Shown: positions 11,001 through 58,776 of the stretch, one piece after another
How the letters are laid out: the number at the start of each line of letters is the position of its first letter
How positions within the stretch are numbered: the stretch's first letter is position 1
Source: Ranitomeya imitator
Taxonomy: Eukaryota
Length of the DNA stretch: 64,000 bases
Reading direction: 5' to 3'
Assembly (NCBI RefSeq): GCF_032444005.1
Contig: NC_091288.1
Coordinates: 217,372,001 to 217,436,000, forward strand
The notes under the pieces: generated by a model
The model's database searches: none
Told to the model about the DNA's origin: nothing
What the model saw: only the letters and a program-made list of their open reading frames with translations
Translations under genes and position numbers: made by a program

Positions 11001-12092
11001 ATCCTGAGTTACCTCCTGTATTATACCCCAGAGCTGCACTCACTATTCTGCTGGTGCAGTCACTGTGTACATACATTACATTACTGATCCTGAGTTACAT
11101 TCTGTATTATACTCCAGAGCTGCACTCACTATTCTGCTGGTGCAGTCACTGTGTACATACATTACATTACTGATCCTGAGTTACATCCTGTATTATACTC
11201 CAGAGCTGCACTCACTATTCTGCTGGTGCAGTCACTGTGTACATACATTACATTACTGATCCTGAGTTACATCCTGTATTATACTCCAGAGCTGCACTCA
11301 CTATTCTGGTGCAGTCACTGTGTACATACATTACTGATCCTGAGTTACATCCTGTATTATACTCCAGAGCTGCACTCACTATTCTGGTGCAGTCACTGTG
11401 TACATACATTACATTACTGATCCTGAGTTACCTCCTGTATTATACTCCAGAGCTGCACTCACTATTCTGGTGCAGTCACTGTGTACATACATTACATTAC
11501 TGATCCTGAGTTACCTCCTGTATTATACCCCAGAGCTGCACTCACTATTCTGCTGGTGCAGTCACTGAGTACATACATTACATTACTGATCCTGAGTTAC
11601 ATCCTGTATTATACTCCAGAGCTGCACTCACTATTCTGCTGGTGCAGTCACTGTGTACATACATTACATTACTGATCCTGAGTTACCTCCTGTATTATAC
11701 CCCAGAGCTGCACTCACTATTCTGCTGGTGCAGTCACTGTGTACATACATTACATTACTGATCCTGAGTTACATTCTGTATTATACCCCAGAGCTGCACT
11801 CACTATTCTGCTGGTGCAGTCACTGTGTACATACATTACATTACTGATCCTGAGTTACATTCTGTATTATACTCCAGAGCTGCGCTCACTATTCTGCTCT
11901 GGAGTAGATCCCTTCTCCCTGTAACCTCTTCTCCCGTTGCTGTAGATCCACGCTGGCTTCCTGGCTTTGTCTCTGGTCGCCGTCGCTCTTCCGTTCCACC
12001 TCATCGTGAAGAATCACCGCCGGCACCGTGACCCCCGCTCGCGCCCCATCCACCTCCGCCCGCTGCCACCGTCCACTTGCGCCAAGGCCTGA
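1824..12092 (+). CDS. SLC43-family (LAT3/LAT4-like) MFS amino-acid transporter, 3' nine coding exons; 5' exons lie left of the window
   Basis: Exons 1824-1916, 3900-4033, 4099-4259, 4457-4612, 5343-5469, 5550-5664, 5883-5956, 6035-6158, 11946-12092 (TGA). All GT-AG with phases that chain correctly. Peptides align by eye to SLC43A1/A2, e.g. LFSSLVIASFSSSATIFTLIK, LESLTCPTFLLHLL, DLYSSVFGALQMIGL, FPSQHFGALLGINTFISSILSLVQHPLFLLVTGPLKKDPFW. Confidence 0.9.
1975..2024. repeat. (TA)n microsatellite
   Basis: About 24 TA units with one TG interruption. Confidence 0.97.
2033..3838. repeat. 34-bp minisatellite interrupted by a solo LTR
   Basis: Unit AGTGCTCTGTCCCTGGTGGCCTAGTGGTGTATAT at 2033-2273 and 3096-3838. 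Confidence 0.95.
2274..3095 (+). mobile_element. Solo LTR of a Ty3/Gypsy (chromovirus-type) retrotransposon
   Basis: TGTTGTG...TTATAACA termini; GTGGCC duplicated at 2268-2273 and 3096-3101; clear homology to the reverse complement of the LTR at 60261-61008 (shared TGTTGTGAATTCTGT, TTTTTCTGTCCAGCTTGCTATT, TCGGGCCTCACTTTGCT, CAGTCATTATATGTGGGGG blocks). Confidence 0.9.
4613..5285. repeat. Degenerate GC-rich ~27-30-bp tandem repeat
   Basis: Variants of GAGAGCCCCCGACTGCCCCTGCCAGGT starting at the 4613 splice donor and decaying rightward. Confidence 0.85.
6175..11900. repeat. 86/81-bp minisatellite filling the last SLC43-like intron
   Basis: Unit TACTCCAGAGCTGCACTCACTATTCTGCTGGTGCAGTCACTGTGTACATACATTACATTACTGATCCTGAGTTACATCCTGTATTA; 81-bp variants lack one CATTA. 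Confidence 0.97.
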
Positions 12093-12127
12093 GGCAGATC
12101 CGGTAGATCACAGACGATCGAGGCCGA

Positions 12128-12133
12128 AATAAA
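12128..12133 (+). terminator. Candidate poly(A) signal of the SLC43-like gene
   Basis: AATAAA 36 nt after the TGA stop. Confidence 0.6.
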
Positions 12134-12148
12134 GGATTTTTTTTTAAT

Positions 12149-12154
12149 TTTATT
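12149..12154 (-). terminator. Candidate poly(A) signal of the PITP gene
   Basis: TTTATT on + is AATAAA on -, about 820 nt beyond the PITP stop. Confidence 0.5.
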
Positions 12155-12970
12155 TTCATAAATGCGGTCACATGATAACTTTAAAAAAAAAAAAAAAATT
12201 ACTAAAGCCCCTCCATCCCGTCCCCCCGGATGATTCCGCCCTCCTGGTCTCTTCTCTATAACCTGCGTCTCTGGACCCTGAAGTGCTGCCCCGCCGGCCT
12301 CCCCTACCGGACCGCACCAAGCAACACCCCCCCCCGCCCGCCATCCCAGAAATGGAACAATCCACGAGAAGGAAAGACATTAACCCCTGTGCCGCTGGAC
12401 TGTGGCAGCATTAACCGCTCCACTGCTGGACATCAGTCACGGCGGATGCACCGATAGTCTCATAATAAATCTCGTAATAAAACTCTTTTTTTCGGTCTGG
12501 CGGAACATTCTAAGAACCGTTAAGGGGGCGGCGGGGTTTGCTCCGCCTCTCAGTGTCCGTCTCCAACAAGGAAGGGTTACACATTAGGCAGCTGAGTCCT
12601 GGGGCAGTGAAGAGGTTAACAGAGTCTGGCAATGATGAGGGCAAGTAGGAAAAAAAAAAAAAAACATTGACGAGAGGCCAAAACATGAAAGGATCGGGCA
12701 GGAAGGAGTCCGCGGGGGACGGCTCAGCAGATCTTCCTCTCCAGTCATTGCTCCTTTCAGACACGCCCCCTGCGCAGATCAGCCAATGAGAAGGAAGGTG
12801 GTCCAGACTCCGCCCCAGAGGGATCTGAAGAAAAACATAGATGTAATTACCTATTCTGCCTGTAGATGGCGACATTGCAAAGCACACCACCCAGTGGTCA
12901 CTGCCGGTACTGCACTGCTCGGCTGATTTAACCCTTTTCTTACTTGTTCCTTTCCGAGGACCCCAGGGCT

Positions 12971-15900
12971 TTATTCATCTTTGGCAGACATTCCTCTGAC
13001 TTGTCCTTTTTGCCTCATCTGGGAGAGAAGATAATAAAATCGATGAGTCCTAGAAATAAAAGGACGACTTAAGACCGATCCCCCCCCCCCCCCGCCAAAA
13101 AAAAAAAACGCACCTCGTCGAGTTCTCGCTGCGTCTCGTCTTCCATCCGACGGATGTCGTCCATGTTCAGGTGCACCCACCGGTCCAACGAGCAGAAGAG
13201 CTGGCGGTGAAAGTTGGTGAAGAGGCGCTTCTCTTGCTAGAATACAAAATGTAGAGGTTTTTGTTGAGCCTGAGAGAGGACAGGAAGGAGCAGAAGCTTG
13301 AGCGCAGCTCTGGATGTGAAAGATGGTACTTATGGTAATACACATCACACTCCAGTCACAACCAAAGCTGCTGCTGGACTTCTGCTCCTTCCTATTAGCT
13401 CTCACATTGTGGCTGGATCACTGAATTACATCCTCGTCACATCCAGAGCTGCAATCAAGGTTCTGCTGCTTTCCTGTTAGCTCTCAGGCCAACATCTCAG
13501 GTTCTCTCTCCAGGAGAGGGGTGCATTGTGGGCGTTTAACACTGTAGAGTAGGGTTTCCTACATCCAACATCTCCCACAATGCAATGCTGTAGGAATTCT
13601 GGGAAATCCTTAAAGGGAGTTTTCACCTTGTGGATAAATTTCTCCATTCTGCCCTGAAGACCCCACCACCGGAACTTGACGGTGACCAGCTTGTAGGCAC
13701 ACATGTGAGGGCACGAGGGGTTGTTCAACACTTCTTTCTACAGCCAAGGACCAAAAAGAGGATTAGCTCACTGCGTCCGTGAACCAGGAGGCTCAGGATG
13801 AGCACTGCTGCTCCATGGTACTGTCCATTTAAAGAAAGTGAAAGGATCGTACCATCCAGTCCTTATTTAGGGGACCTCTCCCCGTCTTCTCCGACCTGAA
13901 GGTCGCAGGATCCTCTTCTGGTTTATAGTCCTGTTGAGACACAGTCAGACCTGGGTAAATGTGCAGTCCCACGTCAGGAGGACACAGCCGCAGTCGTTGC
14001 ACTCACATCTTCGGCGATCTCGGAGCGGTCTGCAATGTCGATAGGTACCACCTCCACTTCCTTCCAGGTCTCGGCATCCAGTCCATGGACCTGCAGGGGA
14101 CGGGAAGGTCCGGGAATTAGGGGGCACAAACCTGCATACGGGGGATGGGCGAGGGAAGACTCACGTTTTCCAGGCTTCCAAAATCGGGTTTATGCCAAGT
14201 CTCGATTTTGATGAAGAAGTCGTCTTTCATGTATTCGTTCTGGGGGGAAAAGTCAGGATTAAAAAATATGCAAAAAGCAGCCAGGATTCTCCATAGACCT
14301 CTATGGAACAGCGCCCCCTGCTGACACAACAACATCAGCACACCGGACGGGAGGGACACGCTGCTGCTAGAGGGGAAGTGATGGGACCGGCCCAGGAAAC
14401 GGCCATCACTGCCACAAAAATAACTGGAGGACGAGTCCACCATCCTGAGAGCGAAATCACCACATCCACTCAGGCCACAGCCGTCATCAGCGTACTACAA
14501 TCCCCAGCATGGCTATAAGGGCCAAAATAGCACCAATCCTGTACAGGTGGGGGGATTGGGGGCTCTGCTGTCTGTGACCGCCTGATGTACAATGATCATC
14601 GGTATCAGAACATCTCACACAGGTAGAAACTAAAGATGAGAGAGCGCGAGGAGATGGAGGCAGAGGGGAGAGCGCGAAGAGAGGGAGGCAGAGGGGAGAG
14701 CGCGAGGAGAGGGAGGCAGAGGGGAGAGCGCGAGGAGAGGGAGGCAGAGGGGAGAGCGCGAAGAGAGTGAGGCAGAGGGGAGAGCGCGAGGAGAGGGAGG
14801 CAGAGGGGAGAGCGCGAGGAGAGGGAGGCAGAGGGGAGAGCGCGAGGAGAGGGAGGCAGAGGGGAGAGCGCGAAGAGAGGGAGGCAGAGGGGAGAGCGCG
14901 AGGAGAGGGAGGCAGAGGGGAGAGCGCGAGGAGAGGGAGGCAGAGGGGAGAGCGCGAGGAGAGGGAGGCAGAGGGGAGAGCGCGAGGAGAGGGAGGCAGA
15001 GGGGAGAGCGCGAGGAGAGGGAGGCAGAGGGGAGAGCGCGAGGAGAGGGAGGCAGAGGGGAGAGCGCGAGGAGAGGGAGGCAGAGGGGAGAGCGCGAGGA
15101 GAGGGAGGCAGAGGGGAGAGCGCGAGGAGAGGGAGGCAGAGGGGAGAGCGCGAGGAGAGGGAGGCAGAGGGGAGAGCGCGAGGAGAGGGAGGCAGAGGGG
15201 AGAGCGCGAGGAGAGGGAGGCAGAGGGGAGAGCGCGAGGAGAGGGAGGCAGAGGGGAGAGCGCGAGGAGAGGGAGGCAGAGGGGAGAGCGCGAGGAGAGG
15301 GAGGCAGAGGGGAGAGCGCGAGGAGAGGGAGGCAGAGGGGAGAGCGCGAGGAGAGGGAGGCAGAGGGGAGAGCGCGAGGAGAGGGAGGCAGAGGGGAGAG
15401 CGCGAGGAGAGGGAGGCAGAGGGGAGAGCGCGAGGAGAGGGAGGCAGAGGGGAGAGCGCGAGGAGAGGGAGGCAGAGGGGAGAGCGCGAGGAGAGGGAGG
15501 CAGAGGGGAGAGCGCGAGGAGAGGGAGGCAGAGGGGAGAGCGCGAGGAGAGGGAGGCAGAGGGGAGAGCGCGAGGAGAGGGAGGCAGAGGGGAGAGCGCG
15601 AGGAGAGGGAGGCAGAGGGGAGAGCGCGAGGAGAGGGAGGCAGAGGGGAGAGCGCGAGGAGAGGGAGGCAGAGGGGAGAGCGCGAGGAGAGGGAGGCAGA
15701 GGGGAGAGCGCGAGGAGAGGGAGGCAGAGGGGAGAGCGCGAGGAGAGGGAGGCAGAGGGGAGAGCGCGAGGAGAGGGAGGCAGAGGGGAGAGCGCGAGGA
15801 GAGGGAGGCAGAGGGGAGAGCGCGAGGAGAGGGAGGCAGAGGGGAGAGCGCGAGGAGAGGGAGGCAGAGGGGAGAGCGCGAGGAAAGGGAGGCAGAGGGG

Positions 15901-18847
15901 TGAGCGCGAGGAAAGGGAGGCAGAAGGGAGAGCGCGAGGAAAGGGAGGCAGAGGGGAGAGCGCGAGGAAAGGGAGGCAGAGGGGAGAGCGCGAGGAAAGG
16001 GAGGCAGAGGGGAGAGCGCGAGGAAAGGGAGGCAGAGGGGAGAGCGCGAGGAAAGGGAGGCAGAGGGGAGAGCGCGAGGAAAGGGAGGCAGAGGGGAGAG
16101 CGCGAGGAAAGGGAGGCAGAGGGGAGAGCGCGAGGAAAGGGAGGCAGAGGGGAGAGCGCGAGGAAAGGGAGGCAGAGGGGAGAGCGCGAGGAAAGGGAGG
16201 CAGAGGGGAGAGCGCGAGGAAAGGGAGGCAGAGGGGAGAGCGCGAGGGAAGGGAGGCAGAGGGGAGAGCGCGAGGAAAGGGAGGCAGAGGGGAGAGCGCG
16301 AGGAGCGGGAGGCAGAGGGGAGAGCGCGAGGAGCGGGAGGCAGAGGGGAGAGCGCGAGGAAAGGGAGGCAGAGGGGAGAGAGAGAGGGAAGGGAGCAACA
16401 GCGAGAGAAAAAACGCGGGAAGGGAAGCAGAAAGGAGAGCAAGTGTGGGAAGGGATGCAGAGGGGATAGAGAGAAAAAGTTCACCATCCAGCGAGTGAAA
16501 TCATCACATCTACTCAGGTCACAGCCATCACCAGTGGTCTATAATCCCTAATGTTTATTTAAAAGCCAAAGTACCCCGGATCCTGTACAGGTGGTGGTGG
16601 GGGGGGCTCCGCTGTCTGAGACCACCTGATGTACACTGATCACCGGTATCAGAACATCTCACACAGGAAAAAAAATCATCACGTCACCACAGAGAGAGAC
16701 TGGAGGAGGCTCCCACAGGGATTTATGGCCAGGAGGAGCAGAAAGAGGGAGGAGGAGAAGAAGATACATGGCACAAAACAGCAGCCGGACCAGGAAGGTC
16801 CCACAGCTACATACTGTCCAAGAAACTGAAACCGCGGAGAGGAGGCAGCGCAGAGGGGAGGCGGCGCAGAGGGGAGGCGGCGCAGAGGGGAGGCGGCGAT
16901 CGCGAGAGGGAAATGAGGAAGAGGGGAGAGCATAAGTGCAGACAGGGAGTGAGAGAACTGGGACATGAGGGACTGTGCAGGTAGGCACACAGCGGGTGGT
17001 GCACATTAGAGGGCAGGTAGGCGCACAGCGGGAAGTTACGGCACTGCAAGCAGGTAGGGGCACAGCGGGCAGGGCATATTAGCGGGTGGTGAGGGCACAT
17101 TAGCGGGTGGTGAGGGCACATTAGCGGGCGGTGAGGGCACATTAGCGGGCGGTGAGGGCACATTAGCGGGTGGTGAACATTAGCGGGCAGGTAGGGGCAC
17201 ATTAGCGGGCAGGTAGGGGCACATTAGCGGGCAGGTACGGCACAGCGGGCAGGTACGGCACAGCGGGCAGGTACGGCACAGCGGGCAGGTACGGCACAGC
17301 GGGCAGGTACGGCACAGCGGGCAGGTACGGCACAGCGGGCAGGTACGGCACAGCGGGCAGGTACGGCACAGCGGGCAGGTACGGCACAGCGGGCAGGTAC
17401 GGCACAGCGGGCAGGTACGGCACAGCGGGCAGGTACGGCACAGCGGGCAGGTACGGCACAGCGGGCAGGTACGGCACAGCGGGCAGGTACGGCACAGCGG
17501 GCAGGTACGGCACAGCGGGCAGGTACGGCACAGCGGGCAGGTACGGCACAGCGGGCAGGTACGGCACATTAGCGGGTGGTGAACATTGGCGGGCGGGTAG
17601 GGGCACAGGGGGCGGGTACGGCACAGCGGGCGGTACACATTAGTGGACAGGTACGGCACAGCGGGCGGTACACATTAGTGGGCAGGTACGGCACAGTGGG
17701 CAGGTAGGGCACATTAGTGGGCAGGTATGGCACAGCAGGTGGGTAGGGGCACAGCGGGCAGTTATGGCACAGCAAGCAGGTAGGGGCACAGCGGGCAGGG
17801 AACATTAGCGGGTGGTGAGGGCACAGCGAGCAGGTATGGCACAGCAGCTAGGGCATATTAGCGGGTGGTGACATTAGCAGGCAGGTAGGGGCACATTAGT
17901 GGGCAGGTATGGCACAGCGGGCGGTGCACATTAGCGGGCGGTGCAGACAGGATGCGCTGTATATACTCACAGTGACGACTGATGTCCGGTTGCAGCCGCG
18001 GGAGGGGGGAGAAGAGAGACGACATGGTTACGAGACCCCCGCACACTATTACCTCTCACTATGCAGCCCCCCGACACTCACTGGTGCGGCAGTACGGATA
18101 CGCGTTCCAGGCTTTCTCGTGGAACACCAGCGATCCCTCGGGGGCGATCATCTTCACGAAGCTGGGGACCTTACTGCGAGGCGAGAACACACGTCACCAC
18201 ACGTCTCACCATTCCTGCGAGCGGCGGCCGGTTGCTATGGGTAACGGCGCTCACCTCTGCAGGTGGTAGATCTTGTGGGTGTACTGCCCCTTCTCCCCGT
18301 CGCGCTCGTACGGCTCGTTCTTCAGCACCTCGATGCCCTCCCCTCCCCCGGTGTTGTCCTTACTGGCCTCCGCCACCGAGAACAGCTGCCCGACCTGGTA
18401 CTGGAGAGAGAAGCCGCACGTTACCGGGGCGACCGCCGAAGCCTCCTCATTGGTCAGCGCGCTCTTCGGTCCAAGCTGGTGGCCAACATCGCGGCGGCCG
18501 TAAAGCAGGAGCCTGGATTTAAAGGGGAAGTGTCGCACTTACCTCCTCCACCGAGATGGGCAGAAAGACGCGGCTGGAAGAGAAAAAACGGAGAAAGTCA
18601 GAAGAGTCCAGCGAATCCCAAACCTCCATGTGACGTAACCGGGGGACACCGCCATATTGTGCACATACACTACAGGGGGCAGAACCACAAGCCCCAGCAT
18701 GCCCAGACACTACAGCTGAGCCCCCTCCCATATGTCACCAGCCCCCTCCCTCACCGGGCAGCCCCCCACAGTCCCTACCAGGGGGTCCCCACATGCCCAG
18801 GCCGGCCCGCGGGCCGGGAGCACTCACAATTCCTTAATCAGGACCAT
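12971..18847 (-). CDS. PITPNB-like: Class I phosphatidylinositol transfer protein (PITP beta-like), complete, 271 aa, 11 coding exons
   Basis: Exons 18828-18847, 18543-18573, 18255-18400, 18082-18173, 17971-17978, 14165-14239, 14007-14090, 13853-13930, 13627-13737, 13114-13236, 12971-13018 total 816 nt, all GT-AG. Protein [49 protein letters not shown]...[33 protein letters not shown]...[16 protein letters not shown]...[15 protein letters not shown]. Family certain; paralog assignment needs a tree. Confidence 0.96.
14640..16382. repeat. 28-bp polypurine minisatellite in PITP intron 5
   Basis: Unit GAGGAGAGGGAGGCAGAGGGGAGAGCGC, about 62 near-perfect copies; a GAGGAAAGGG variant block from about 15880. 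Confidence 0.97.
17000..17940. repeat. 18-bp GC-rich tandem repeat with degenerate flanks
   Basis: GCGGGCAGGTACGGCACA perfect at about 17226-17566; related 19-21-bp variants either side. Confidence 0.92.
17971..17978 (-). CDS. 8-nt microexon of the PITP gene
   Basis: cag|TCGTCACT|gtgagt on -; supplies I-V-T and restores frame between the 92-nt and 75-nt exons. Confidence 0.92.
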
Positions 18848-18849
18848 CC

Positions 18850-19190
18850 TTTCCTCCCTCCGCTTCACCAGCCCCTGCAACACAGGCCGGAAACCGGAAA
18901 CCAGGCCGCCCAGGCTGGAGGGAGGGACACATGCTTGTGCTCGGAGGGAGCCGGCGGCCGGTGACGTCACTGTCCAGCGACGCGCAATCTGAAAGTGCTG
19001 TATGTGGCCGCACGGCCGCTGGTTGCTAGGGGGCTGCTTGGTTACTAAGAGCAAGGGGTGCGATGAGCAGAGGGAGATTCAGCCAATAGGAGGAGGAGGA
19101 GGCGGGGCTTGTGCGACAGTTCCCAGAAAACAGCAACAAAAAACGTCAGAAACGAGGTTCCGGTGCGGCTGCAGGAAGGACGTGAGGAGC
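18850..19190 (-). promoter_or_regulatory. CpG-rich PITP promoter/5'UTR
   Basis: High CpG density from about 18000 to 19200; palindromic CRE TGACGTCA 18962-18969, CCAAT 19083-19087, GC box near 19101, tandem CCGGAAA near 18887-18900. Confidence 0.65.
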
Positions 19191-33708: not shown

Positions 33709-45546
<11,838 letters not shown>

Positions 45547-45819
45547 GAGGAGCCAAAAACATCTTGTTATTTTGTAGGATGGTGGAAAAATTATCCACAA
45601 CTGTCTGTAGGATCTAGTTGATTACTGGGATAGTTGATTATAATACACTTCCCACTTATGGAGGCTCCTCCCCTCATCATGGCTCCTCCCCTTTGTATAT
45701 GTGTGGCGGTTGCCTTGCTGCTTTTACCTGTGTTTTTTGATCGTTGTGTCCTCGCAGTTCTCTGTGCACAGACTTTGTACTCGGCAGACAATCTGAACAA
45801 CCAAAGCTGCAGTGTAAAG

Positions 45820-46835
45820 TGGAGCGCCCCCAGACACAGGCCCGCGGGGTACTCGGTACCGGTGTTGTCACGGTGGCTAGACCCGGTCCGTGACCCTGCT
45901 AAGGGGCGTCCAATGAAAGGTGATGGTGCGTGGTGCAAGGTGCGAGGAATAACGAGGACGCAGGGTTGCAGTCTCTTTACCTTTTTACTGAAGGCTTCGG
46001 GGTCCGCAATCCAGAGCACGGCTAACAGGGCTGTCTGACACCGGCCGGTCCGAAGGCACATCCAGAGTTCCCCTTGCAGGTGGAAATCAGTGTCTACCTT
46101 CTAGTGCCTGTGTGTTGTAGTCCTTCCCTGCTGAGCACCACAGGATAGTCCTCACAATGGTCGTATTTGTTCTTTCTGTCTCCGTCCCCCAGGTATATCT
46201 GGCTAGGACGCACCCATATGACAGGTAGGCCTGGAGTTATTCTGGGACCCTAGAGATGCCCCTCTCCCACGATTGCCTCCTATGTCTGTTTAGGTGATTT
46301 AAGTCAGACAGCCAACCTGTAATTAACTGTCCTGCCGCTCTTTGAAGTAATGCGTGGAGTCTGTTACTTCCTCGGTGCTCCGGCCACCGGCTATGCGCCT
46401 CAGTAGGATGTTGCCGATCTCAGGGCACGACTCCTACTGGTTCTTTCTCCTTCGTACTATGATCCCGCTTCTCACTTCTCCACAATATACTTCGCTTTGT
46501 GTCCTTCCTTAGGATGCCGCCGCAAGGTAGTGCAGGCGCGGCTCCGTAACGATCTGTCCTTTCTGCTAGGTACCTGCCAGGTTCCCACTTTTGACAGGTC
46601 CTCTCTGGAGCTCTCCCAGGCTGCGTTCTGTCCTCACTTCCTATCCAACCCCCAGTTTCTCAAGTGTGAGGAGTGGCCTAATACATAGTGCCTTTTGCTC
46701 CCCCTGGTGGCCGGAGTGTGAAGTGTGACTGTGATACCTGGTCAGGTGAACTCCTTCAGTGCAATCAGACATAACATCACTCCCCTTAGTGGCAGAGCGA
46801 CATTACTGCAACGACCAGGACTCTGGGGCGCTGCA
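45820..46835 (-). repeat. 3' LTR of the Gypsy element
   Basis: About 1016-bp direct repeat of 56434-57452; G-run PPT at 46838-46858 on -. Confidence 0.93.
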
Positions 46836-49800
46836 CATCCCCCCCCCCCCCCCCCCCGGTTAAATCCAGTACTCCCGGACTGGGAAAAGAAGAACAACAA
46901 TACATGTTAATAGAAAACACACAACATTTTTTAAATACTATGAACAAGTAAATATAACAGTGCTTTCCGTTATGGAAGGTGAGAACGCTTGAACGTTGCA
47001 AAAGATTGGTCATGCACAGTTCATGACTCCCAGTTCAGTAGGTGCAACCATAGAACAGCAGGGACCGCGGGTAAACAAAGGGGCCCCTGTGAAAGTTTTG
47101 GAGTGATTCACTGTTCATCACACCATTGTCCATTTTTAACCTATAACACAAATATTTACACAAACATTTTCAACCAAATAGCAACTATCGTTAGTATCGC
47201 CAAGTTTTGTAGCGAAGTGGAGTCTGATTCTTGGTGCTACGCGTAGACCTCCGCAGCGCAGGGGTTGCTATTGGCCTGACGGGGCCCGCTACGCTTGCTA
47301 TCGCTGGTGTAGTGCACTGTCTTCTAGCTACACTTCTAGTGAGTCTGGGCAGCACTGGCATACTGGAGTTCTCCGAGCTGCCACTACTAATGGTGGGCAT
47401 GGCAGATTCACAGATAGCAGAGGGAGGGCCCGTTGGTTCGACTGTTGGCATTGCATCTTCTGGTGGGATCGACTGCGCTTTCGGGTCTGGATGCCCTGGC
47501 ACCACATTTAGTTCTGGCGGTTTCAGTTGACGAAACATTAAGACAGGCACCACAATGGCCTGATTTATTTGAGTCCAAGACCGGGGAAAATCGCCAAGAA
47601 CCGTGTGTATCATCTTCTCCTCTTCCACGGGCGGAGAAGTCCTGGGATCTGTTTCCCCATCTCTCAGCTTATCAGGGCATATATTAAGGTGGTCTCTGGA
47701 TATGGCCGTTGAGGTTTCCCCTCCATCTTTGCTGATGAGACAGACCTTCGTATTGTCGAAATCGGAGGGCAGAATGGTATACGGTTCCGCTTCCCATTGG
47801 TCATCAAGCTTGTGTAGTCTCCTCTTTCGTTTGAGTACCTGCTCACCAGGTGACAATGGAGCCGCGGAAGCATACTGGTTGTAGTCCCTCTCTTGTTTTT
47901 GTCTGGCTTGGGCGAGACTTCTTTCTACACATTCCTGTAATTTGCTGTACCTTTGCTGCCTCTCGGTATCCCAATCCGCATCTGGCGATATATCTTCGGG
48001 GGTCAGGACCCCCATGTCCAGATCGATGGGTAACTTGCTAGACCTTCCTCGCATCAGGTACGCTGGGGTGCAGTTGGTGGAATTCACCGGGATGTGGTTG
48101 TACATATCTACCAAGTCTTGTAACTTTGTGGGCCACAAGTTCCGCTCCTCTACAGGTAAGGTCTTCAGTAAGTCGATCACCACTTGGTTCATCTTCTCAC
48201 ACATCCCGTTGGTCTATGGATGATATGGCGTGGTTCTGATCTTCTTACACCCGTACAAATTGCAGAACTCCTGGAACACCTCCGCTTCAAATGCTGGTCC
48301 CTGATCGGTCAGCACCTTCTCCGGGTACCCATGGGGTCTACAGAAGTACTGCTGGAAGGTTTTGGCAGCCGTCCTAGCCGTTAGATCTTTGACCGGCACG
48401 ACTACCAGGAATCTGGAGTAGTGGTCCACAATGGTGAGAGCGTAGATATAACCTGACCGGCTAGATGTTGGCTTTACATGATCCAGCGCGACCAACTCGA
48501 GCGGCCGTTTGGTGATGATGGGCTGCAAGGAAGCCCGTTGGCTGTCACGATCCTTCCGGCGTAGGCTACAGGGGCCACACTCTCGACACCACTTCTCGAT
48601 GGCTTTCTTTATGCCGATCCAGTAGAACCTCCCACGGAGTAGCCTCTCCAGCTTCCTCCATCCGAAGTGTCCTGCCCCATCGTGGTACGCTCCCAGGACC
48701 ATTGGCACATCTTGTCTTGGGACCACAATCTGCCATACCAATTCATGAGTGTGGGGGTCGATGCTCCTTCGGCACAGCTTGCCATCGTGAATAAACAGTT
48801 TGCCCCTCTCCTTCCACAACTGTAATGACTCTGGTGGATCATGTGGGCCGGGATGCAAACCTGCCTGCGTCAGGAGCTCTTTCACCCGACAGACCGCAGG
48901 GTCACCATCCTGGTTCTCTGTCCACCCGTGATGGGGCAGGGGATTCAACGGGGCGCCCTGTTTATTTCTGCGCCTGTTCTCCACCTGATGTGACTGGGTT
49001 GCCTTGGGGCGATGTAAAGTGGGCAGCTCTACTTCTTCAAATGCTTCTGGATCTTCCCCCGTTTCGGGCAAGTGAGGCATTCGGGACAATGCATCGGCAT
49101 TCGCATTCTTGTGCCCCGCCCGGTACTTGATGGTGAAGTCGTAATTGGACAACCGGGCCATCCACCGCTGCTCCAAGGCACCGAGTTTTGCTGTGTCCAA
49201 GTGCGTTAGTGGATTATTATCCGTGAAGACGGTGAATTTTGCTGAGGCCAGGTAATGCTTGAACCTCTCCGTCACGGCCCAAACGATGGCGAGGAACTCC
49301 AGCTTAAAGGAACTGTAGTTGTCTGGGTTCCTTTCGGTGGGGCGAAGCTTCCTGCTGGCGTAAGCGATTACTCTTTCCTTTCCCTTCTGGACCTAGGACA
49401 GCACAGCTCCCAGCCCCACGTTGCTGGCATCCGTATACAATACAAACGGTTGGTCATATTCAGGGTAGGCTAGTACTTCTTCTCTCGTCAGTGCCGATTT
49501 TAAGCAGGTGAACGATCCTTCCAGTCCGTCGTTCCAATCAAACGGGGTATTCTTACCCTTGGGTTTCTTGGGTTGGCCCACCAGCAGGTCTTGCAATGGC
49601 GCGGCCTTCTTGGTGAAATCTTTGATAAACCTCCGGTAGTAGCCCACCAACCCGAGGAACTGCTGGACTTCATGGAGGTTACCGGGCTGCGGCCAGTCCT
49701 TGATCACCGTGACCTTGTCGGGGTCTGGGGCCACTCCTTCGGCACTCACCACATGGCCCAGGTACTGTACTTTGGGTTTTAGCAGATGGCATTTGGACGG

Positions 49801-50179
49801 TTTCACCTTTAAGCCAAAGTTGGACAGAGCTTCAAACACCTTGGCCAGGTGCTTCAAATGGTCTTCATAGGTCTTAGAGAAGACAATGACATCGTCCAGA
49901 TACAGCAGCACGGTCTCAAAGTTCTTGTGTCCCAAACAGCACTCCATCATCCTCTGGAACGTCCCCGGGGCGTTACACAATCCGAAGGGCATGTAGTTGA
50001 ACTCGCAGAGACCCATCGGCGTCGTGAAGGCCGTTTTTTCCTTGTCCGCCTCTGCCACGGGAACCTGCCAGTACCCACTGGTGAGATCTAAGGTAGAGAA
50101 GTATTTAGCAGACTTTAACGCAGCCAAGGACTCCTCTATCCTAGGCAGGGGGTATGCGTCCTTATGTGTAATGCGGTTT

Positions 50180-50237
50180 ACGATACGATACGATACAATA
50201 CGATACACTTTATTGATCCCGTGGGAAATTATGCCTA
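50180..50237 (-). mobile_element. ~58-bp extremely 5'-truncated LINE 3' end inserted in Gypsy RT
   Basis: AATTTCCCACGGGATCAATAAAGTG(TATCG)n tail on -; splits VDYRQL|NRITHKDAYPLP. Confidence 0.7.
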
Positions 50238-51072
50238 TAACTGCCTATAATCCACACACATCCTCATGGTGCCATCTTTCTTCCTAACGAGGACTAATGG
50301 AGCTGCCCAGGGGCTACAGCTGTCTCTCACTACCCCAGCCTCCTTCATCTCTCGCAACATGTCCTTGGCACACTGATAATGAGCTGGGGGTACAGGACGG
50401 TATCTTTCTTTTATGGGTGGGTGATCTCCTGTGGGGATGTGATGTTGAATCCCTTTTACCCGCCCGAAATCAAGGGAGTGCTTGCTGAATACCCGCTCAT
50501 ACTCGTGAACCACTCTGTAGGCCCCCTGTATCTGGTGAGATGGAGTAGAATCAGTGCCCACATGTAATTCCCGACACCAATCTTTCGATTGCCCTGCAGA
50601 GCCGTTGTTCTCCGCCGGATTGGACGGGACCAAGGGCCCGGGTGCCTGTATCACGCTATTATTAACAGTAAACAGCTTGGCAAGTGTGACATATTTGGTT
50701 AGGTGGACTTCTTCCTCCCCACAGTTAAGGACACGTACTGGCACCCTCCCCTTGCGGACGTCGACCACCCCTCTGGCTGTCAGGAGGGTAGGCCTATTCT
50801 CCGAATACACGGGTTCTACCAGGGCCTGATAGTCTTTACCCCCGAGGCCTATGGCTGCCCGACACCATATTAACATTTCACTCCTGGGGGGTATTGCAAT
50901 GGGGTTCGAATCACTCACTGTGACCCGGCCAATTTCACCACCAGTCAGCTCCACTTGCTGTCTCCGCATTAGGGCTCTGATTTCTTTCTGTAGGGCACGT
51001 TGTTCACTGTGACCAGCTGTCTCTGCTACTTGCTGCAACAAAACAATAACTTCTGCAAGACAATTTTCTATG

Positions 51073-51330
51073 CAGTAAATAGTAATAACGGTCCTAGGAA
51101 CGCTGGAAATGAGACCAAAACAAGGATTTTAGTGTTGTTTGTGGTTCAACACTAAAATCCTTGTTTTGGACTCATTTCCAGCGCTCCTAGGACCGTTATT
51201 ACTATTTACTGCATTTTGTATCCTCCTAGAAGGTTAACGGCTGGAGCTGCGGTGGACCTTTTGCTTTCAATTCTAACTGTGACCCTCACAGTGCTCCCTA
51301 GTGACCGCTTTCTTTTCCCTTGAATTTCAC
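51073..51330. mobile_element. 258-bp insertion with 15-bp TSD and a 143-nt foldback
   Basis: AGACAATTTTCTATG at 51058-51072 and 51331-51345; removal restores [16 protein letters not shown]; inverted arms 51071-51137 and 51147-51213. Confidence 0.85.
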
Positions 51331-51492
51331 AGACAATTTTCTATGACATTAGTACCGATGGTCATCATGGGGTTACATTCACGTTGGTCAATATCAACAA
51401 TGACAATTCCCTGGGCCTCCAATTCTACCCGCCCCACCTTAATAGTGACCTCTTTATACCCCACTTGCGGCAGCGGCTGACCGTTACTAGCT

Positions 51493-54400
51493 ATTATTAT
51501 TATTATTTATTGTTATAGCGCCATTTATTCCATGGCGCTTTACATGTGAGGAGGGGTATACATAATGAAAACAAGTACAATAATCTTAAACAATACAAGT
51601 CATAACTGGTACAGGAGGAATGAGGACCCTGCCCGCGAGGGCTCACAATCTACAAGGGATGGGTGAGAATACAGTAGGAGAGAGGACCCTGCCCGCGAAG
51701 GCTCACAATCTACAAGGGATGGGTGAGAATACAGGAGGAGAGAGTAGAGATGGTCATGCAGCGGTTTGGTCGATCGGTGGTAGCTGCAGGTTGTAGGCTT
51801 GTCTGAAGAGGTGGGTCTTCAGGTTCTTTTTGAAGGTTTCGATGGTAGGTGAGAGTCTGATGTGTTGTGGTAGAGGGTTCCAGAGTAGGGGTGATACGCG
51901 AGAGAAATCTTGTATACGATTGTGAGAAGAGGAGATAAGAGGGGAGTAGAGAAGGAGATCTTGTGAGGATCGGAGGTTGCGGGTAGGTAAGTACCGGGAG
52001 ACGAGGTCACAGATGTATGGAGGAGACAGGTTGTGGATGGCTTTGTACGTCATGGTTAGGGTTTTGTAGTGGAGTCTCTGGGCAATGGGGAGCCAGTGAA
52101 GGGATTGACAGAGGGGAGAGGCCGGGGAATAGCGGGGGGACAGGTGGATTAGTCGGGCAGCAGAGTTTAGAATAGATTGGAGGGGTGCGAGAGTGTTAGC
52201 GGGGAGGCCACAGAGCAGGAGGTTGCAGTAGTCAAGGCGAGAGATGATGAGGGCATGGACTAGGGTTTTTGCAGATTCATGGTTGAGGAATGAACGGATT
52301 CGTGAAATATTTTTGAGTTGCAGTCGGCAGGAAGTGGAAAGGGCTTGGATATGTGGTTTGAAGGAGAGATCAGCGTCAAGGATTACCCCGAGGCAGCGAG
52401 CTTGTGGGACTGGGGAGAGTGGGCAGCCATTTACTGTAATGGATAGGTTCGTTGGGGGGGTCGCCTGAGATGGGGGAAAGATGATGAATTCTGTTTTGTC
52501 CATGTTAAGTTTCAGAAATCTAGCGGAGAAGAAGGATGAAATAGTGGACAGACATTGAGGGATTCTGGTTAGTAGGGAGGTGATATCTGGTCCAGAGATG
52601 TAGATCTGTGTGTCGTCAGCATAGAGGTGATACTGAAAGCCATGAGATTCTATGAGCTGTCCCAGGCCAAAGGTGTAAATGGAGAAGAGCAAGGGCCCAA
52701 GGACTGAACCTTGTGGGACTCCGATAGATAGAGGGCGAGGTGAGGAGGTGGTGTGTGAGTGGGAGACGCTGAATGTCCGGTCTGTTAGGTATGATGAGAT
52801 CCAGGATAGGGCCAAGTCTGCGATGCCAAGGGATGAGAGGGTCTGTAATAATAGGGAATGGTCCACTGTGTCAAAGGCAGCCGACAGGTCGAGGAGGAGG
52901 AGGACAGAGTAGTGTCGCTTGCTCTTGGCGGTTAAGATGTCATTGGTGACTTTAGTTAGGGCAGTTTCGGTGGAATGGTGTGACCGGAAGCCAGATTGTA
53001 GGCGGTCAAAGAGGGAGCAGGAAGAGAGATGGGAGGACAGTTCAAGGTAGACGTGTTGCTCCAGTAGTTTGGAGGCATAGGGGAGAAGTGATATAGGGCG
53101 ATAGCTAGATACAGAGGATGGGTCAAGAGAGGGCTTTTTGAGGATAGGTGTGATTGAGGCATGTTTAAAGCTTGAGGGGAAAACACCAGTTGTTAGAGAT
53201 AAGTTGAAGAGATGGGTTAGGGTTGGGATGAAGATTGTGGTGAGGTTTGGGATGAGGTGGGATGGGAGCGGGTCAAGTGCACAGGTGGTGAGATGTGATC
53301 TTGAGAGTAGAGTGGAGAGTTGATCTTCTGTAATGGTGGAGAAGTTGGTTTTGGAGGTGGAGGGCTGGGAAATCGGGAGGAAGGGCTCTGGGGGTTGTTG
53401 ACCAAAACTGTCTCTAATGCTATCAATCTTCTGCTTGAAAAATGAGGCAAAGTCTTCAGCAGAGATAAGTGGGGAGGGAGGAGGTGCTGGGGGACGGAGG
53501 AGAGAATTGAAGGTGTTGAATAACTGTTTAGGGTTGTGAGAGAGGGAGGATATGAGAGATGAGAAGTAGGTTTGTTTAGCTGTGGCAAGTGTGGTCTTGA
53601 AAGTAGTGAGGGACTGTTTGAATGCGATGAAGTGCTCGTTAGAGTGGGATCTTTTCCATCTGCGCTCAGCAGCCCTGGAAGCTCGCCTAAGTTCTTTGGT
53701 CAGGCTGGTGTGCCAGGGCTGTCTGTTGATTTTGCGAGCTTTGGTATGTGTAAGTGGGGCAGCAGATTCCAAAGCTACAGCTATTGTGGTATTATATAGA
53801 GCAGCAGCGTCATCCGCATTGTGTATGGAACTTATGCCTGTGAGGGGGAGGAGGGATTCAGATAATGAATGTAGGTCAAGATGTTTAATATTTCTGCGAG
53901 GGTGTGAAAGTTTGTGGGGTGGGGATTGTAGACATGGAGTGGAGAGAGATGAGAATGTGAGAAAGTTGTGATCAGAGAGTGGAAGAGGTGAGTTAGAGAG
54001 GTTAGATAGGGAGCAGAGGCGGGTGAAGATGGGGTCCAGTGTGTGACCGTCTTTGTGAGTGGCTGCAGAAGACCATTGAGTGAGGCCGAAGGAGGAAGTG
54101 AGAGTTAGAAGTTTAGTGGCAGCTGAGAGGGAAGTGTCAATGGGTATGTTGAAGTCGCCCATGATGATAGTGGGGATGTCCGCAGAAAGGAAATGAAGTA
54201 GCCAGGTGGTGAAGTGCTCAAAGAAGATGGTGGCTGGCCCTGGGGGGCGGTAAATGACAGCCAGTTGGAGGTTGGTGGGGGAGTAGATGCGCACAGAGTG
54301 CACCTCAAAGGAAGGGAGGGTAACAGAGGGTGGCAGTGGGATTGGGGTGAAGGAGCAGTTATCTGACAGGAGAAAACCAACTCCTCCGCCATGTTTGCTG

Positions 54401-55355
54401 CTGGGGCGGGGTGTGTGGGAAAGTGGAAGCCACCGTAAGAGAGTGCAGCAGGGGAGACTGAGTCAGAGGGGGTGAGCCAGGTTTCGGTGATGGCGAGGAA
54501 GGAAAGTTTGGTAGTAACAAAGAGATCATGGATGTAGGAGAGCTTGTTGCAGACAGAGCGAGCGTTCCACAGAGCTCCCGTTAGTGGGACTGGGGAGGCG
54601 GGGGCTGGGTGAATGGGTATTAGGTTAGAGAGGTTACGGAAGTTTGTGCTAGAGCGTGGATGGGAGGTAGAAATGATTGTGGGAATATGGTGAGGAGGAC
54701 CAGGATTTGGAGAGATATCACCAGCAGTAAGAAGGAGCAGAGAAAGTGTTAGCAGGTGGGAGCAGGAGAGGGCATGAGGGGGCTGTCTGTGCTTGGAGAC
54801 AGAGGATTGTATGTTAAGGAACAGTTTGGAGGAGGAGGTGAGGTGGATGGGGAGGATTGAAGAGGAGATGAACAGTTCCTTACTTTGTGTAGGGATCAGG
54901 GGAGGTAGCAGAAAGTGAAGGATTATAGGGGTGAAAGTGAAAACAAACAGAAACATTCTTTTCAAAGACTGTGGCCAGTTCCAATTCAGGTTTTAATTCT
55001 ACTGTAATCCACACTTTTAAGGACACACTTCTAAGGGATCACACTGCAGACTGAAGTCCATGCAGACTTCTACTATGCAATATATGGCAAACTAAGTGCG
55101 TTCAGGTGTGAAGCAGAGAGGAGTGGTCTCTGCTCATCTTGGTCAGAGAATTAAGGGTGGACCAGATGCATACAATCAGGCCTGAGTAAACAAGGTCATA
55201 AATAACACAGGGTAAGCCGGGGTTAGCTGAAAAGCATACCATGAGAATGCTAGGAGCAGAGGAAAGTCTGTGTGGAAAGCTGGGTGATGTAATTATGTGC
55301 ACTTCATAGACAGACAGCGCAGGGGAGCAGGCTGGATAGACATACCATGAGAATG
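51493..55355 (-). mobile_element. Near-full-length L2-clade LINE nested in the Gypsy protease
   Basis: APE plus RT ORF2, (AAT)n tail at about 51493, duplicated ~62-bp 3'UTR segment; host reading DDDLT|...ASNGQPLP is split. Confidence 0.93.
51754..54956 (-). pseudogene. L2 ORF2 (2A-like peptide, APE endonuclease, reverse transcriptase) with one frameshift near 54420
   Basis: GDISPNPGP; ALWNARSV, LAITETWL, IMGDFN (APE); [39 protein letters not shown] (RT). Confidence 0.9.
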
Positions 55356-56157
55356 CTAGGTAAGATCATCATCGGGGGCACGGGTGATGTAGGTGTCCTC
55401 CCAATAACGTCTATAAAGAATGTAGGGCATAGTTGTCACCTGGGAACCGGTGTCCAGCAAAGCGTTCATGGGGATACCGTCGATCACGATGGGGAGAACT
55501 GGTCGCCCTCCAGTCAGGTCTGGATTCTGCATGGCCAGGAAGTGTAGCTGGGCCCTTTGATTACTGCACAGGAGCCCTTCGATGAACCGCTCTTTCAGGA
55601 GTTTATCTTCATCTTGCATGCTCACTTTGCTTGATTGCCCGCAGCGCCTCCTGCAGATTAAGGGCATAGTCCCGTAAGCTATCCTGCGGCCTCTGCTTGC
55701 ACCCATAGAACGTCAATTTAATTTCCGTAGCGGTGCGGGTGTCAAAGGTGGTTTTAAGCTTTGCAAATAATTGTTGCGCAGTTTTCTTATCCGCAGCGGG
55801 CCAGGACTTCACTTCCCTCAACGCCGCTCCAAAGAGTTGGCCGGTTATCATATGAACTTTCTGAGGCTCCGTCAAGGGATAAAACTCGAGCAGGCTATAA
55901 ATCCCTTCTTTAAAGTCAGTTAACGTATGAGCTTCTCCGGAGTATCGCGGGAGCCAGGCGGCCCCAGGTAGGTACGGCATAGAGAAGGGCATTATGGCTG
56001 TGGTAGCTGCAGCAGTATCCGGCTGGTTGATGGGAGCGGCAAGCCCCGCGGCATACGGCGGTGATACCAGACCCGCGGCTGCGTCTACCACGGAATCCGG
56101 AAGTGCTCCCGAGTCTGCAGCCGTGGCCGCCGCCTCCGCTCCTCCGGGATCCGACAT
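55356..56157 (-). pseudogene. Gypsy gag (PNMA/capsid-like) and protease N-half, frameshifted and internally deleted
   Basis: MSDPGG...WLPRYSGE...FYGCKQRPQDSLRDYALNLQEAL; then LLKERFIEGL; protease ALLDTGSQVTT. Confidence 0.85.
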
Positions 56158-56412
56158 GGCCGTTCTTCCCCCCCTGCTAACCTGCCGGGGTCGGGGTTCT
56201 TCTTCCGAGATCGGCACCTCACCGCGTCTCCCTGCTCCGCGCTCTTTTCCAGCCGGCTCCACCCACGAAGCTATGGCTCCTCCCCTCGCGCTCCACACAG
56301 CGCGGCAATGGCGGATTTTTGGCGGCAAATAGCGATACACAGTCTTTGCAATAAGTCACAGTTCAATCACAGTTACAAGGCACACATGACCTGATTCTTC
56401 AGGCTTAAGTAG

Positions 56413-56430
56413 ATCCTGTTCGTGACGCCA
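56413..56430 (-). other. Primer-binding site for tRNA-Ser(CGA)
   Basis: TGGCGTCACGAACAGGAT on -; its complement ATCCTGTTCGTGACG+CCA matches the 3' 18 nt of the vertebrate tRNA-Ser(CGA) isodecoder beginning GTCACGGTGGC (recalled sequence; confirm in GtRNAdb). Confidence 0.8.
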
Positions 56431-56433
56431 AGT

Positions 56434-57452
56434 TGGAGCGCCCCCAGACACAGGGCCGCGGGGTACTCGGTCCGGGGTTGTCACGGTGGCTGGACCCGGT
56501 CCGTGATCCTGCTAAGGGGCGTCCAATGAAAGGTGATGGTGCGTGGTGCAAGGTGCGAGGAATAACGAGGACACAGGGTTGCAGTCTCTTTACCTTTTTA
56601 CTGAAGGCTTCGGGGTCCGCAGTCCAGAGCACGGCTAACGGGGCTGTCTGACACCGGCCGGTCCGAAGGCACATCCAGAGTTCCCCTTGCAGGTGGAAAT
56701 CAGTGTCTACCTTCTAGCGCCTGTGTGTTGTAGTCCTTCCCTGCTGAGCACCACAGGATAGTCCTCACAACTGTCGTATCTGTTCTTCCTCTCTCCGTCC
56801 CCCAGATTATATGGTTAGGACGCAGCTTTATGACAGGTAGGCCTGGAGTTATTCTGGGACCCTAGTGTCGCCCCTCTCCCACGTTGCTTCCTATGTCTTC
56901 TTAGGTGATTTAAGTCAGACAGCCAACCTACAATTAGCTGTCCTGCCGCTGTTTGAAGTACTACGTGGAGTCTGTTACTTCCTCGGTGCTCCGGCCACCG
57001 GCTATGCGCCTCAGTAGGATGTTGCCGATCTCGGGGCACGACTCCTTCTGGTTCTATCTCCTTCGTACTACGATCCCGCTTCTCACTTCTCCACAATATA
57101 CTTCGCTTTGTGTCCTTCCTTAGGATGCCGCCGCAAGGTAGTGCAGGCGCGGCTCCGTAACGATCTGTCCTTTCTGCTAGGTACCTGCCAGCTTCCCAGT
57201 TCTGACAGGTCCTCCCTGGAACTCTCCCAGGCTGCGTTCTCCCTAACTTCCTATCCAACCCCCAGATTTACCAGTGTGAGGAGTGGCCTAATACATAGTG
57301 CCTTTTGCTCCCCCTGGTGGCCGGAGTGTGAAGTGTAATGTGTGACTGTGATACCTGGTCAGGTGAACTCCTTCAGTGCAATCAGACATAACATCACTCC
57401 CCCTAGTGGCAGAGCGACATTACTGCAACGACCAGGACTCTGGGGCGCTGCA
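56434..57452 (-). repeat. 5' LTR of the Gypsy element
   Basis: About 1019 bp, followed on - by a 3-nt spacer and the PBS. Confidence 0.93.
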
Positions 57453-58776
57453 TAAAGCATGGCGAAGAGCTGGAGCATTGGCTTTAACCCTATAAATACA
57501 AGAGAGGTGACATTCAGACCCCCTCAGCCTCCTGGGGGCAAAGCTGGAGTCACTAATCCTAACTTGTACACTGTAACAAACCCTCCATAAAGAACAGTTT
57601 GGAGAAATCTCTTGTGATTTTCTGTGTTCCGCGTGCGCCGTGTATAGATGTCCAAGTATCGGGGGCTGCGCTTTCAGGAAAGAGGAATCCTCGATGGTAT
57701 AAAATTTATTATCAAGTGTAACATTCTAAAGAATTCCAAATATTGGCGCCGGTGTTCTCCATTCCGTCCCCGGGGGAGATTGTATTTTCCCTGTTATTTA
57801 GGCACACTTTTTGCAACGTGTTTTTATTTTTTTTGCTAAATAGCCATGACGTTGGTCAGAGACCCAAAAATACCGGATATTTGATTTTGTGCCAAATTCA
57901 GGACCTCCGCCCTCCCCCCCGCTGCCATAATAAAGAAACAGCAATAAAAACCACAAGAGAAAAACAAACAATAAAAACGACTCGCGGATGATAAACCAGA
58001 GAAAATCACAGGAACTTTCCTGAACTCCGAGGCGGGAGGACGCTCAGATCTGTGCGCAGAGGCGGCTGCGTCACAATGTGTCGGCGCTGATTGCACGTTC
58101 GCACACGATACAAAGGTGCAGATCAGGAGCCGTCACCTTCCACCCCGATCCCGGCCCGCGGCCCCCGCCACATGACTGATAGCAGCGGTACAATGTGCCT
58201 CTCTGATAGCGACGCGCCCGCTACACCCGCAGCCCATGTAGTACACCTTGCCCCGGACAGGGTCCGACCGCGCAACATTAACCCTTCACCTTCTATAGCA
58301 GCTGCACAACAAGGAAGCCGGAGAGGGTAGGATGCAGCTTTGGCTGTAACTAGAGAACACAGACCTTAGCGAGCTCCTATACAGAGATACTGGGCTGCAA
58401 GATGGAAAACGGATATGGATGCCGAAAAGTGGAGATCAAGGAGGGATCAGCTCGCCATGTTACAGAGGAGCAGGGTAAAAGCTGGGCTCTTACATAGGGT
58501 CAGTGCGGCAAGGGGGCGGAGCTACTGTTGTGGGAGGGGCCAGTAAGTGACGCTATAAGATGACAACGAGTTATTCCAAGGTAGTAAATAACTGGACAAA
58601 GGTGGAAAAGAAAACGAAGGAGCAGAAAAAGCAGCGGAGACCGAAGAGGAGGCGAGCGGCAGGTGAGAGAAGACTCTGGGAAGTGTTCACAGAAGGTTTT
58701 GTTCGGAACTTGATCATTTAAAGTCACATCGCCCCGAAAACGTCTGACGACTAAAATTAGCTTGTGTGATTCCAGA

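Follow-up and report, generated by a model that had tools for sequence, protein, structure and literature searches.

Does a long terminal repeat (LTR) retrotransposon read its primer tRNA through the primer-binding site (PBS) alone, or also through a second site in its RNA? The question is raised by a degenerate Ty3/gypsy element of 11.6 kb (45820..57452, minus strand) in a 64,000-nt stretch of the Ranitomeya imitator genome (contig NC_091288.1 of assembly GCF_032444005.1, positions 217,372,001 to 217,436,000 of the forward strand), which was analysed as a whole and is referred to here as the window. In addition to an 18-nt PBS for tRNA-Ser(CGA), the U5 region of its LTRs carries an 11-nt sequence, termed block 1, that is complementary to the 5' end of the same tRNA. 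Sequence comparison and modelled folding suggest, with about even confidence, that block 1 is a second contact with the primer tRNA, forming a split or extended PBS that would count as a cis element conserved in one Ty3/gypsy lineage of frogs.

The PBS of the element, ATCCTGTTCGTGACGCCA (56413..56430, minus strand), matches the 3' end of tRNA-Ser(CGA) including CCA at 18 of 18 positions, and a 3-nt spacer (56431-56433) separates it from the 5' LTR (56434..57452, minus strand; 1019 nt). As the reference for the primer, a eukaryotic tRNA-Ser(CGA) gene of 82 nt (L002:2222-2303:-) was used, which begins GTCACGGTGGCCGAG and ends ATCCTGTTCGTGACG. Contig L002 was found by scanning metagenome contigs with a 22-mer from the T arm and acceptor stem, and only its tRNA gene was used; a bacterial-looking contig from the same scan (L001) was not used. 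L002 is not of human origin, since the D-loop of its tRNA differs from the published mouse and human sequences. Its ends agree with the mammalian literature, in which mouse tRF5-20-SerCGA-2 is GTCACGGTGGCCGAGTGGTT (PMC11551137), human tRF-Ser-CGA-013 is TCCTGTTCGTGACGCCA (PMC9659620), and the tRNA-Ser(CGA) end seen in a tRF-5 also matches the L002 gene (PMC7330628). The tRNA-Ser(CGA) sequence used in an earlier, sequence-only reading of this DNA was therefore essentially right. Full tRNA-Ser sequences, including the AGA/UGA type, have been reported with the 5' end GTAGTCGTGGC and the 3' end ...CCTGCCGACTACGCCA (PMC10359600). For block 1 to serve as a primer contact, the frog tRNA-Ser matched by the PBS is required to have the 5' end GUCACGGUGGC.

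Block 1 (56480..56490, minus strand; sense GCCACCGUGAC) lies 49 nt upstream of the PBS, and its copy in the 3' LTR occupies 45867-45877. The U5 sequence GCCACCGTGAC is the perfect complement of tRNA-Ser(CGA) nt 1-11, with 11 of 11 pairs being Watson-Crick, and the plus strand at 56480-56490 and 45867-45877 accordingly reads GTCACGGTGGC, the same as the tRNA 5' end. Only 0.012% of U5 shuffles gave a register that pairs with all of nt 1-11 inside 200 nt of U5 (P = 1.2e-4), while the best local alignment between U5 and any part of the tRNA had a score reached by 1.5% of dinucleotide shuffles (P about 0.015). The predicted energy of the duplex between block 1 and the tRNA is -23.4 kcal/mol, compared with -12.9 +/- 1.8 for shuffles. 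Throughout the 64-kb window, on both strands, the only exact tRNA matches of at least 11 nt are block 1, in its two LTR copies, and the PBS. The strings on which the sequence-only reading was built, GTCACGGTGGC, GCTAAGGGGCGTCCAATG (56511-56528; 45898-45915) and ATCCTGTTCGTGACGCCA, are all in place, and its proposal that U5 is complementary to tRNA nt 1-11, outside the 3' 18 nt that bind the PBS, holds above chance, with the pairing kept in relatives as described below.

Relatives of the element were compared from Anomaloglossus (L003), Phyllobates (L004 and L011), Dendrobates tinctorius (L005-L007), Ranitomeya (L013), Dendropsophus (L012), Pseudophryne (L010) and two Logan contigs. In BLAST comparisons of the window LTR with the first three frog loci, only the PBS aligned and the LTRs were otherwise unalignable; a MAFFT alignment of the last 300 nt before the PBS made a common U5 framework visible. 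About nine related families, drawn from five frog genera (Dendrobates, Ranitomeya, Anomaloglossus, Phyllobates and Dendropsophus), carry block 1 at 44-89 nt upstream of the PBS, as does a Logan contig. The window shares the 13-mer CACGGACCGGGTC, letter for letter, with loci of three further frog species (from Phyllobates, D. tinctorius and Ranitomeya). Both D. tinctorius blocks, GCTGCTGTGAC and GCTACTGTGAC, keep 11 of 11 pairs, their 2-3 differences all giving G.U pairs, and one Ranitomeya block, GCCACTGTGAC, pairs at all 11 positions with one G.U. The second Ranitomeya block (GCCACC-C-GTGAC) contains one bulge, the Anomaloglossus block GCCACCACTGAC forms 6+4 bp, and the blocks of the Logan contig and of Dendropsophus are GCCCACCGTGCAC and CCGTGAC, respectively. 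The variants GCUGCUGUGAC, GCUACUGUGAC and GCCACUGUGAC differ only at positions that form G.U pairs (P 7e-4 to 4e-3). Most of the block 1 differences among families are G.U-compatible, and the bases that face tRNA nt 7-11, GCCA(C), are either kept or altered only to G.U-compatible letters. Moreover, the 5' end of the cognate tRNA-Ser is predicted to bind 5-12 kcal/mol better than that of the non-cognate tRNA in seven families.

The block also changes with the identity of the primer. Two Phyllobates families carry, within a homologous U5 framework, the PBS TGGCGTAGTCGGCAGGAT for tRNA-Ser(AGA/UGA), and their blocks are GCCACGACTGC (RNA GCCACGACUGC) and GCCAC-ACGGA-GACTAC (RNA GCCAC-ACGGA-GACUAC). 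The first of these forms 11 of 11 pairs with the tRNA sequence GUAGUCGUGGC, one of them G.U (P = 5.8e-4), with a duplex energy of -21.2 for the cognate tRNA versus -13.9 for the non-cognate one. Co-variation of the block with PBS type in relatives, which the sequence-only reading had named as a check on its proposal, is thus seen in these two of the about nine families, where an AGA-type block accompanies an AGA-type PBS. No block is present in three copies of a gypsy lineage that is unrelated but has the same Ser-AGA PBS. Both the conserved pairing and its switch with PBS type are what an extended or multipartite PBS predicts.

In predicted structures, block 1 is exposed. It falls in the loop of an apical U5 stem-loop (56468..56503, minus strand) whose 5' arm is CGGACCGGGUCC (56492-56503) and whose 3' arm is CCCCGGACCG (56468-56477). 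The minimum free energy (MFE) fold of the window sequence leaves the block unpaired in an 18-nt loop, and its predicted probability of being unpaired is 0.80 in the U5 of the 5' LTR, compared with 0.46 for the rest. RNAalifold, run on 10 and on 11 relatives, places the stem CGGaCCGGGuc / ggCCCGGuaCCG in all 11 sequences with the block in the loop. A basal U5 stem, predicted to join the last ~20 nt of the LTR and to end 0-4 nt from the PBS, has its 5' arm at 56507..56528 (minus strand), which pairs with the LTR terminus at 56433-56453. Its covarying pairs across families include UUGGA/UCCAA, UUGGG/CCCAA, UUGAC/GUCAA, UUGAG/CUCAA and UGUGAC/GUCACA.

This basal stem also accounts for a second block, at 56511-56528, to which the sequence-only reading had ascribed complementarity to the D arm and the 3' anticodon strand of the tRNA. 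When nt 1-11 are removed, the best remaining tRNA match is the 7-mer TCCAATG, at P about 0.65, so that the second block is noise as far as the tRNA is concerned; it is not conserved in relatives and belongs to the 5' arm of the basal stem. Of the multipartite PBS clasping both tRNA ends that had been envisaged, the complementarity to nt 1-11 is retained, being conserved and switching with the PBS, and the D-arm and anticodon parts drop out. A local U5 hairpin, GTCACGG/CCGTGAC, had also been pointed out as a possible competitor. All its positions match in the 3' LTR (45867-73 / 45887-93); the 5' LTR version contains a single mismatch (CCGTGAT, 56500-06), and there its upstream arm (56500..56506, minus strand) reads AUCACGG in the sense strand, compared with GUCACGG at 45887-45893 in the 3' LTR. 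In the 3' LTR copy, the 7-bp hairpin GUCACGG/CCGUGAC is predicted to compete for the block, the probability of the latter being unpaired falling to 0.36; the 7-bp form is specific to this family.

In a split or extended PBS of this kind, annealing of the 3' 18 nt of tRNA-Ser to the PBS would open the acceptor stem, and the freed 5' strand together with nt 8-11 (G1-C11) could then pair with the U5 loop. Both strands of the acceptor stem would in this way be held by the element. Such a clamp may help to stabilise the cognate primer or to select it, and initiation could be gated by it; we infer that the pairing forms in particles and aids reverse transcription.

Several points weigh against a primer contact at block 1. 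The tRNA reference was drawn from a metagenome contig and the mammalian literature, and may not equal the frog's own tRNA-Ser. Conservation of the block is partly a matter of descent because the families are related, and the switch to the AGA type, although strong evidence, probably took place just once in evolution. In three families the pairing is weak or comes with bulges only (cognate and non-cognate tRNAs are about equal in F3 and F5, and there is none in F4), and the Pseudophryne relatives have no clear block. The apical stem-loop shows little covariation because its sequence is conserved. In addition, an 11-nt pairing in an 18-nt loop with the tRNA 3' end at the PBS is pseudoknot-like and beyond what folding tools score; RNAcofold of the full tRNA with the U5-PBS region returned the PBS helix only, a result that speaks neither for nor against the loop contact, which would be a pseudoknot that the program does not represent.

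The U5 of most relatives contains a third site, a 12-nt copy of the PBS start (PBS2), which bears on the alternatives. Its sequence is TGGCGTCACGAA (in the AGA families TGGCGTAGTCGG), complementary to tRNA nt 65-76 with CCA included, and CCACA-GG precedes it. The type of PBS2, CGA or AGA, tracks that of the actual PBS. It is found at L003 9587, L004 9389, L005 9441, L006 9523, L007 9079, L011 about 7432 and about 9513, and L013 about 20520. In the window it has decayed in both LTRs, leaving a remnant at 56540..56551 (minus strand; sense TTGCACCACGCA) with 8 of 12 positions matching TGGCGTCACGAA. A generic scan for TGG-initiated direct repeats, covering dual PBSs for other tRNA types, recovered only satellites and the present lineage.

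One alternative is that block 1 acts within the RNA itself: its 3' half (CCGUGAC) would pair with the portion of the element's own PBS that derives from the acceptor stem (GUCACGA), or of PBS2, masking the PBS until the primer is placed. The block can pair in this way because sequences complementary to either strand of a helix also pair with one another, so that the masking helix would be a mirror image of the acceptor stem and covariation with PBS type would follow automatically. RNAduplex does predict 6-bp helices between block and PBS at -9 to -13 kcal/mol in most families, PBS2, the block and the PBS itself change together in the AGA-type families, and related masking stems are known from retroviral leaders (PMC5371799). 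However, such pairing accounts for just 6-7 of the 11 nt, while the GCCA(C) part is also kept or changed G.U-compatibly. The duplex with the tRNA is about twice as stable as that with the PBS in four of the six families tested, with F5 as an exception (-15.1 vs -12.7), and both MFE and ensemble folds leave the block mostly unpaired rather than bound to the PBS. At the position of the tRNA G7.U66 pair, the block has C, which fits G7, and not U, which would fit the A in the PBS. The short span and weaker duplex of the block-PBS pairing, the C at G7.U66 and the G.U-compatible changes in GCCA favour the tRNA 5' end as the partner, and a masking role is considered unlikely.

The sequence-only reading had also raised an old capture of primer cDNA into U5. 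In its full form, an ancestor would have read through into its primer during plus-strand strong-stop synthesis, copying the entire tRNA with CCA, and then taken a downstream PBS; U5 would thereby have absorbed the old PBS (now PBS2), the body of the tRNA and the complement of its 5' end, and the block would persist by descent with no role of its own. Read-through past position 58 is documented when the reverse transcriptase stop is absent (PMC8599865). Like read-through copies of primer tRNAs, PBS2 with its CCA complement fits a reverse-transcribed mature tRNA in its spacing, its start lying 87-99 nt upstream of the block end in most families, compared with 85 nt for a tRNA with CCA. LTR starts read TGTGG, and therefore CCACA could be an old LTR end, the sequence CCACA-GG before PBS2 resembling such an end plus spacer. 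Known read-through copies differ in lying downstream of the PBS and in usually being dead ends, whereas the frog material lies within U5, with an unrecognisable middle and two ends that follow the primer now in use. The segment between PBS2 and the block (49-89 nt) is not tRNA-like in any family (8 sequences, P 0.14-0.92); ARAGORN found 0 tRNA genes in the window, and a search of 56350-56650 against Rfam gave no tRNA match at E <= 10 and no Rfam family in U5. On these grounds a whole-tRNA relic is not demonstrable, and U5 does not qualify as a tRNA gene, a tRNA-derived short interspersed element or a tRNA-like structure. Moreover, a neutral remnant would not be expected to stay pairing-competent at 11 of 11 positions amid decaying surroundings, nor would an AGA switch be expected at three sites inside a homologous, non-tRNA framework. 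A capture of primer cDNA thus gains from PBS2 and its tRNA-like spacing, but leaves the middle segment and the concerted three-site switch unexplained, and as the whole account of block 1 a functionless relic seems quite improbable. A relic origin and a present function of the block are nevertheless compatible.

It is also doubtful, and rather strongly so, that the other strand is what matters, with minus-strand DNA or antisense RNA mimicking the acceptor stem in strand transfer, primer removal or recognition by a host factor, or, in a variant, with the sense block being targeted by 5' tRNA fragments of the host. The tRNA 5' end does stand on the window's plus strand as GTCACGGTGGC, relatives add TTCGTGACGCCA downstream at about tRNA spacing, and 5' fragments of exactly tRNA-Ser(CGA) exist in mammals (PMC11551137, PMC7330628). 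Against this, ARAGORN and Rfam detect neither a cloverleaf nor any tRNA-like fold in the antisense strand, and the mimic would be incomplete in the window element since PBS2 is decayed in both of its LTRs. A site exposing the element to host small RNAs should be lost rather than conserved, and it is RNA-RNA pairing by the sense strand that the G.U-compatible substitutions favour, since they give A.C and C.A mismatches on the other. Finally, although some 2 exact 11-mer matches to a query of 85 nt would be expected across 128 kb and the second block is indeed at chance level, a chance resemblance in a G+C-rich U5 is hardly credible given the register probability of 1.2e-4 within 200 nt of the PBS, and is effectively refuted by the relatives, which have the block in the same place in about nine families and switch it with primer type.

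A wider interpretation, which we regard as possible but hold less firmly than the primer contact at block 1, is that this lineage reads its primer via both acceptor strands, that PBS2 could dock a second acceptor end, and that the whole set, which may have been built from primer cDNA, is retuned when the primer changes. If so, this would be a primer-selection mechanism undescribed for any retroelement. A conserved, primer-tracking contact at the 5' acceptor strand would show that the strand released on annealing can itself be captured. The sequence rule that would follow from it, a PBS together with a U5 loop holding the reverse complement of tRNA nt 1-11, could serve to annotate which primers are used and to recognise primer switches in frog genomes, which are very large and rich in LTRs.

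To our knowledge, the choice and placement of the primer tRNA are understood in detail for only a few systems, namely Ty1, Ty3, human immunodeficiency virus type 1 (HIV-1) and Rous sarcoma virus (RSV). A contact that is conserved, follows the primer and involves the 5' acceptor strand would differ from the T-, D- and anticodon-arm contacts of these four. Extended primer contacts are established for Ty1, Ty3, HIV-1, FIV (the immunodeficiency virus of cats) and RSV, and use the T, D or anticodon arms (PMC5371799). The frog element resembles the bipartite PBS of Ty3, a member of the same superfamily, and the extended PBS of Ty1 (boxes 0, 1 and 2.1) in the putative pairing of an LTR-retrotransposon RNA with its tRNA beyond the 3'-terminal PBS; in Ty1 and Ty3 the extra contacts are required to build the initiation complex (PMC5371799). 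Those contacts involve the T and D arms of tRNAiMet and lie downstream of the PBS in Ty1 and ~4.8 kb away in U3 in Ty3, whereas the putative frog contact would involve the 5' acceptor strand and nt 8-11 of tRNA-Ser and be made by the loop of a U5 hairpin, which precedes a complete 18-nt PBS by about 50-90 nt. In having a U5 motif upstream of the PBS for a second part of the tRNA, the frog element is like HIV-1 with its primer activation signal and A-rich loop, FIV, and RSV and the avian sarcoma-leukosis viruses (ASLV) with their U5-TpsiC interaction (PMC5371799). As in these viruses, among them RSV/ASLV with the U5-IR stem, a U5 stem abuts the PBS and the motif can be masked by alternative local pairing. 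The motifs of HIV-1, RSV and FIV differ in pairing over 6-8 nt with the TpsiC arm or the anticodon loop and in being retroviral. A full-text literature search returned no account of a primer contact through the 5' acceptor strand (tRNA 5' end) or of the PBS architecture of frog gypsy elements.

The element that carries block 1 was delimited by its LTR pair, by reading its ends and by Pfam domains. The 5' LTR reads TGCAGCGCCCCAGAG...TCTGGGGGCGCTCCA in the sense strand with a terminal inverted repeat of ~15 nt, and the 3' LTR (45820..46835, minus strand; 1016 nt) is about 96-97% identical to it. The LTRs are direct repeats with TG...CA ends (sense TGCAG...CTCCA; TGCAGCGCCCC...GGGGGCGCTCCA) and are flanked by a 5-bp target-site duplication, TAAAG, read directly at 45815..45819 on the left and 57453-57457 on the right. 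As the tRNA PBS stands beside the 5' LTR, so a polypurine tract (46836..46859, minus strand), a long G run followed by ATG, abuts the 3' LTR. A PNMA-like gag open reading frame (ORF) identified with Pfam lies at 55609..56340 (minus strand), and its closest protein relatives come from dendrobatid frogs. The pol fragments (48214..50208, minus strand) contain the Pfam domains RVT_1 and RNase H (49393-50208) and Integrase_H2C2 and rve (48214-49275), which on the minus strand gives the gypsy order of reverse transcriptase, RNase H and integrase. In relatives, protease, reverse transcriptase, RNase H and integrase are encoded within one ORF; in the window element, pol is broken into several ORFs. 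The internal region measures 9.6 kb because a non-LTR fragment of a long interspersed nuclear element (LINE) is nested inside it (51754..54303, minus strand), with an Exo_endo_phos tail and RVT_1 in a single 849-aa ORF.

Several further features were observed at the related loci. In Pseudophryne corroboree (L010, 6594 and 63144), a tRNA-Ser(CGA)-like PBS contains one extra base, TGGCGTCC[A/G]CGAACAGGAT, which may be either a bulged PBS or a match to a local tRNA variant. Two complete U5-PBS units of one D. tinctorius family stand 800 nt apart at 8871 and 9672 of L006, in what may be either a tandem or a rearranged LTR arrangement. The Phyllobates locus L011 holds a nest at 6326-19111, in which an AGA-type element (LTRs 8620-9677 and 15728-16797) is inserted within a second AGA-type element, from another family (LTRs 6326-7612 and 17833-19111). 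An 86-bp satellite (TGGGGTATAATACAGGATGTAACTCAGG...) at about 6270-11880 of the window (minus strand) is also present in D. tinctorius L005 and L006, which, like the gag matches, assigns the window to Dendrobatidae or a close relative.

Within the window, the plus strand at 50897-50912, in the internal region of the gypsy element, reads CAATGGGGTTCGAATC, which joins two 10-mers of tRNA-Ser (nt 41-50 and 61-70), probably by chance. A 60-nt tandem duplication with 93% identity lies at 51610-51729, beside the nested LINE fragment. Just outside the 3' LTR, a repeat array with a 53-nt period (38+15) extends over 43950-45064 and overlaps long plus-strand ORFs.
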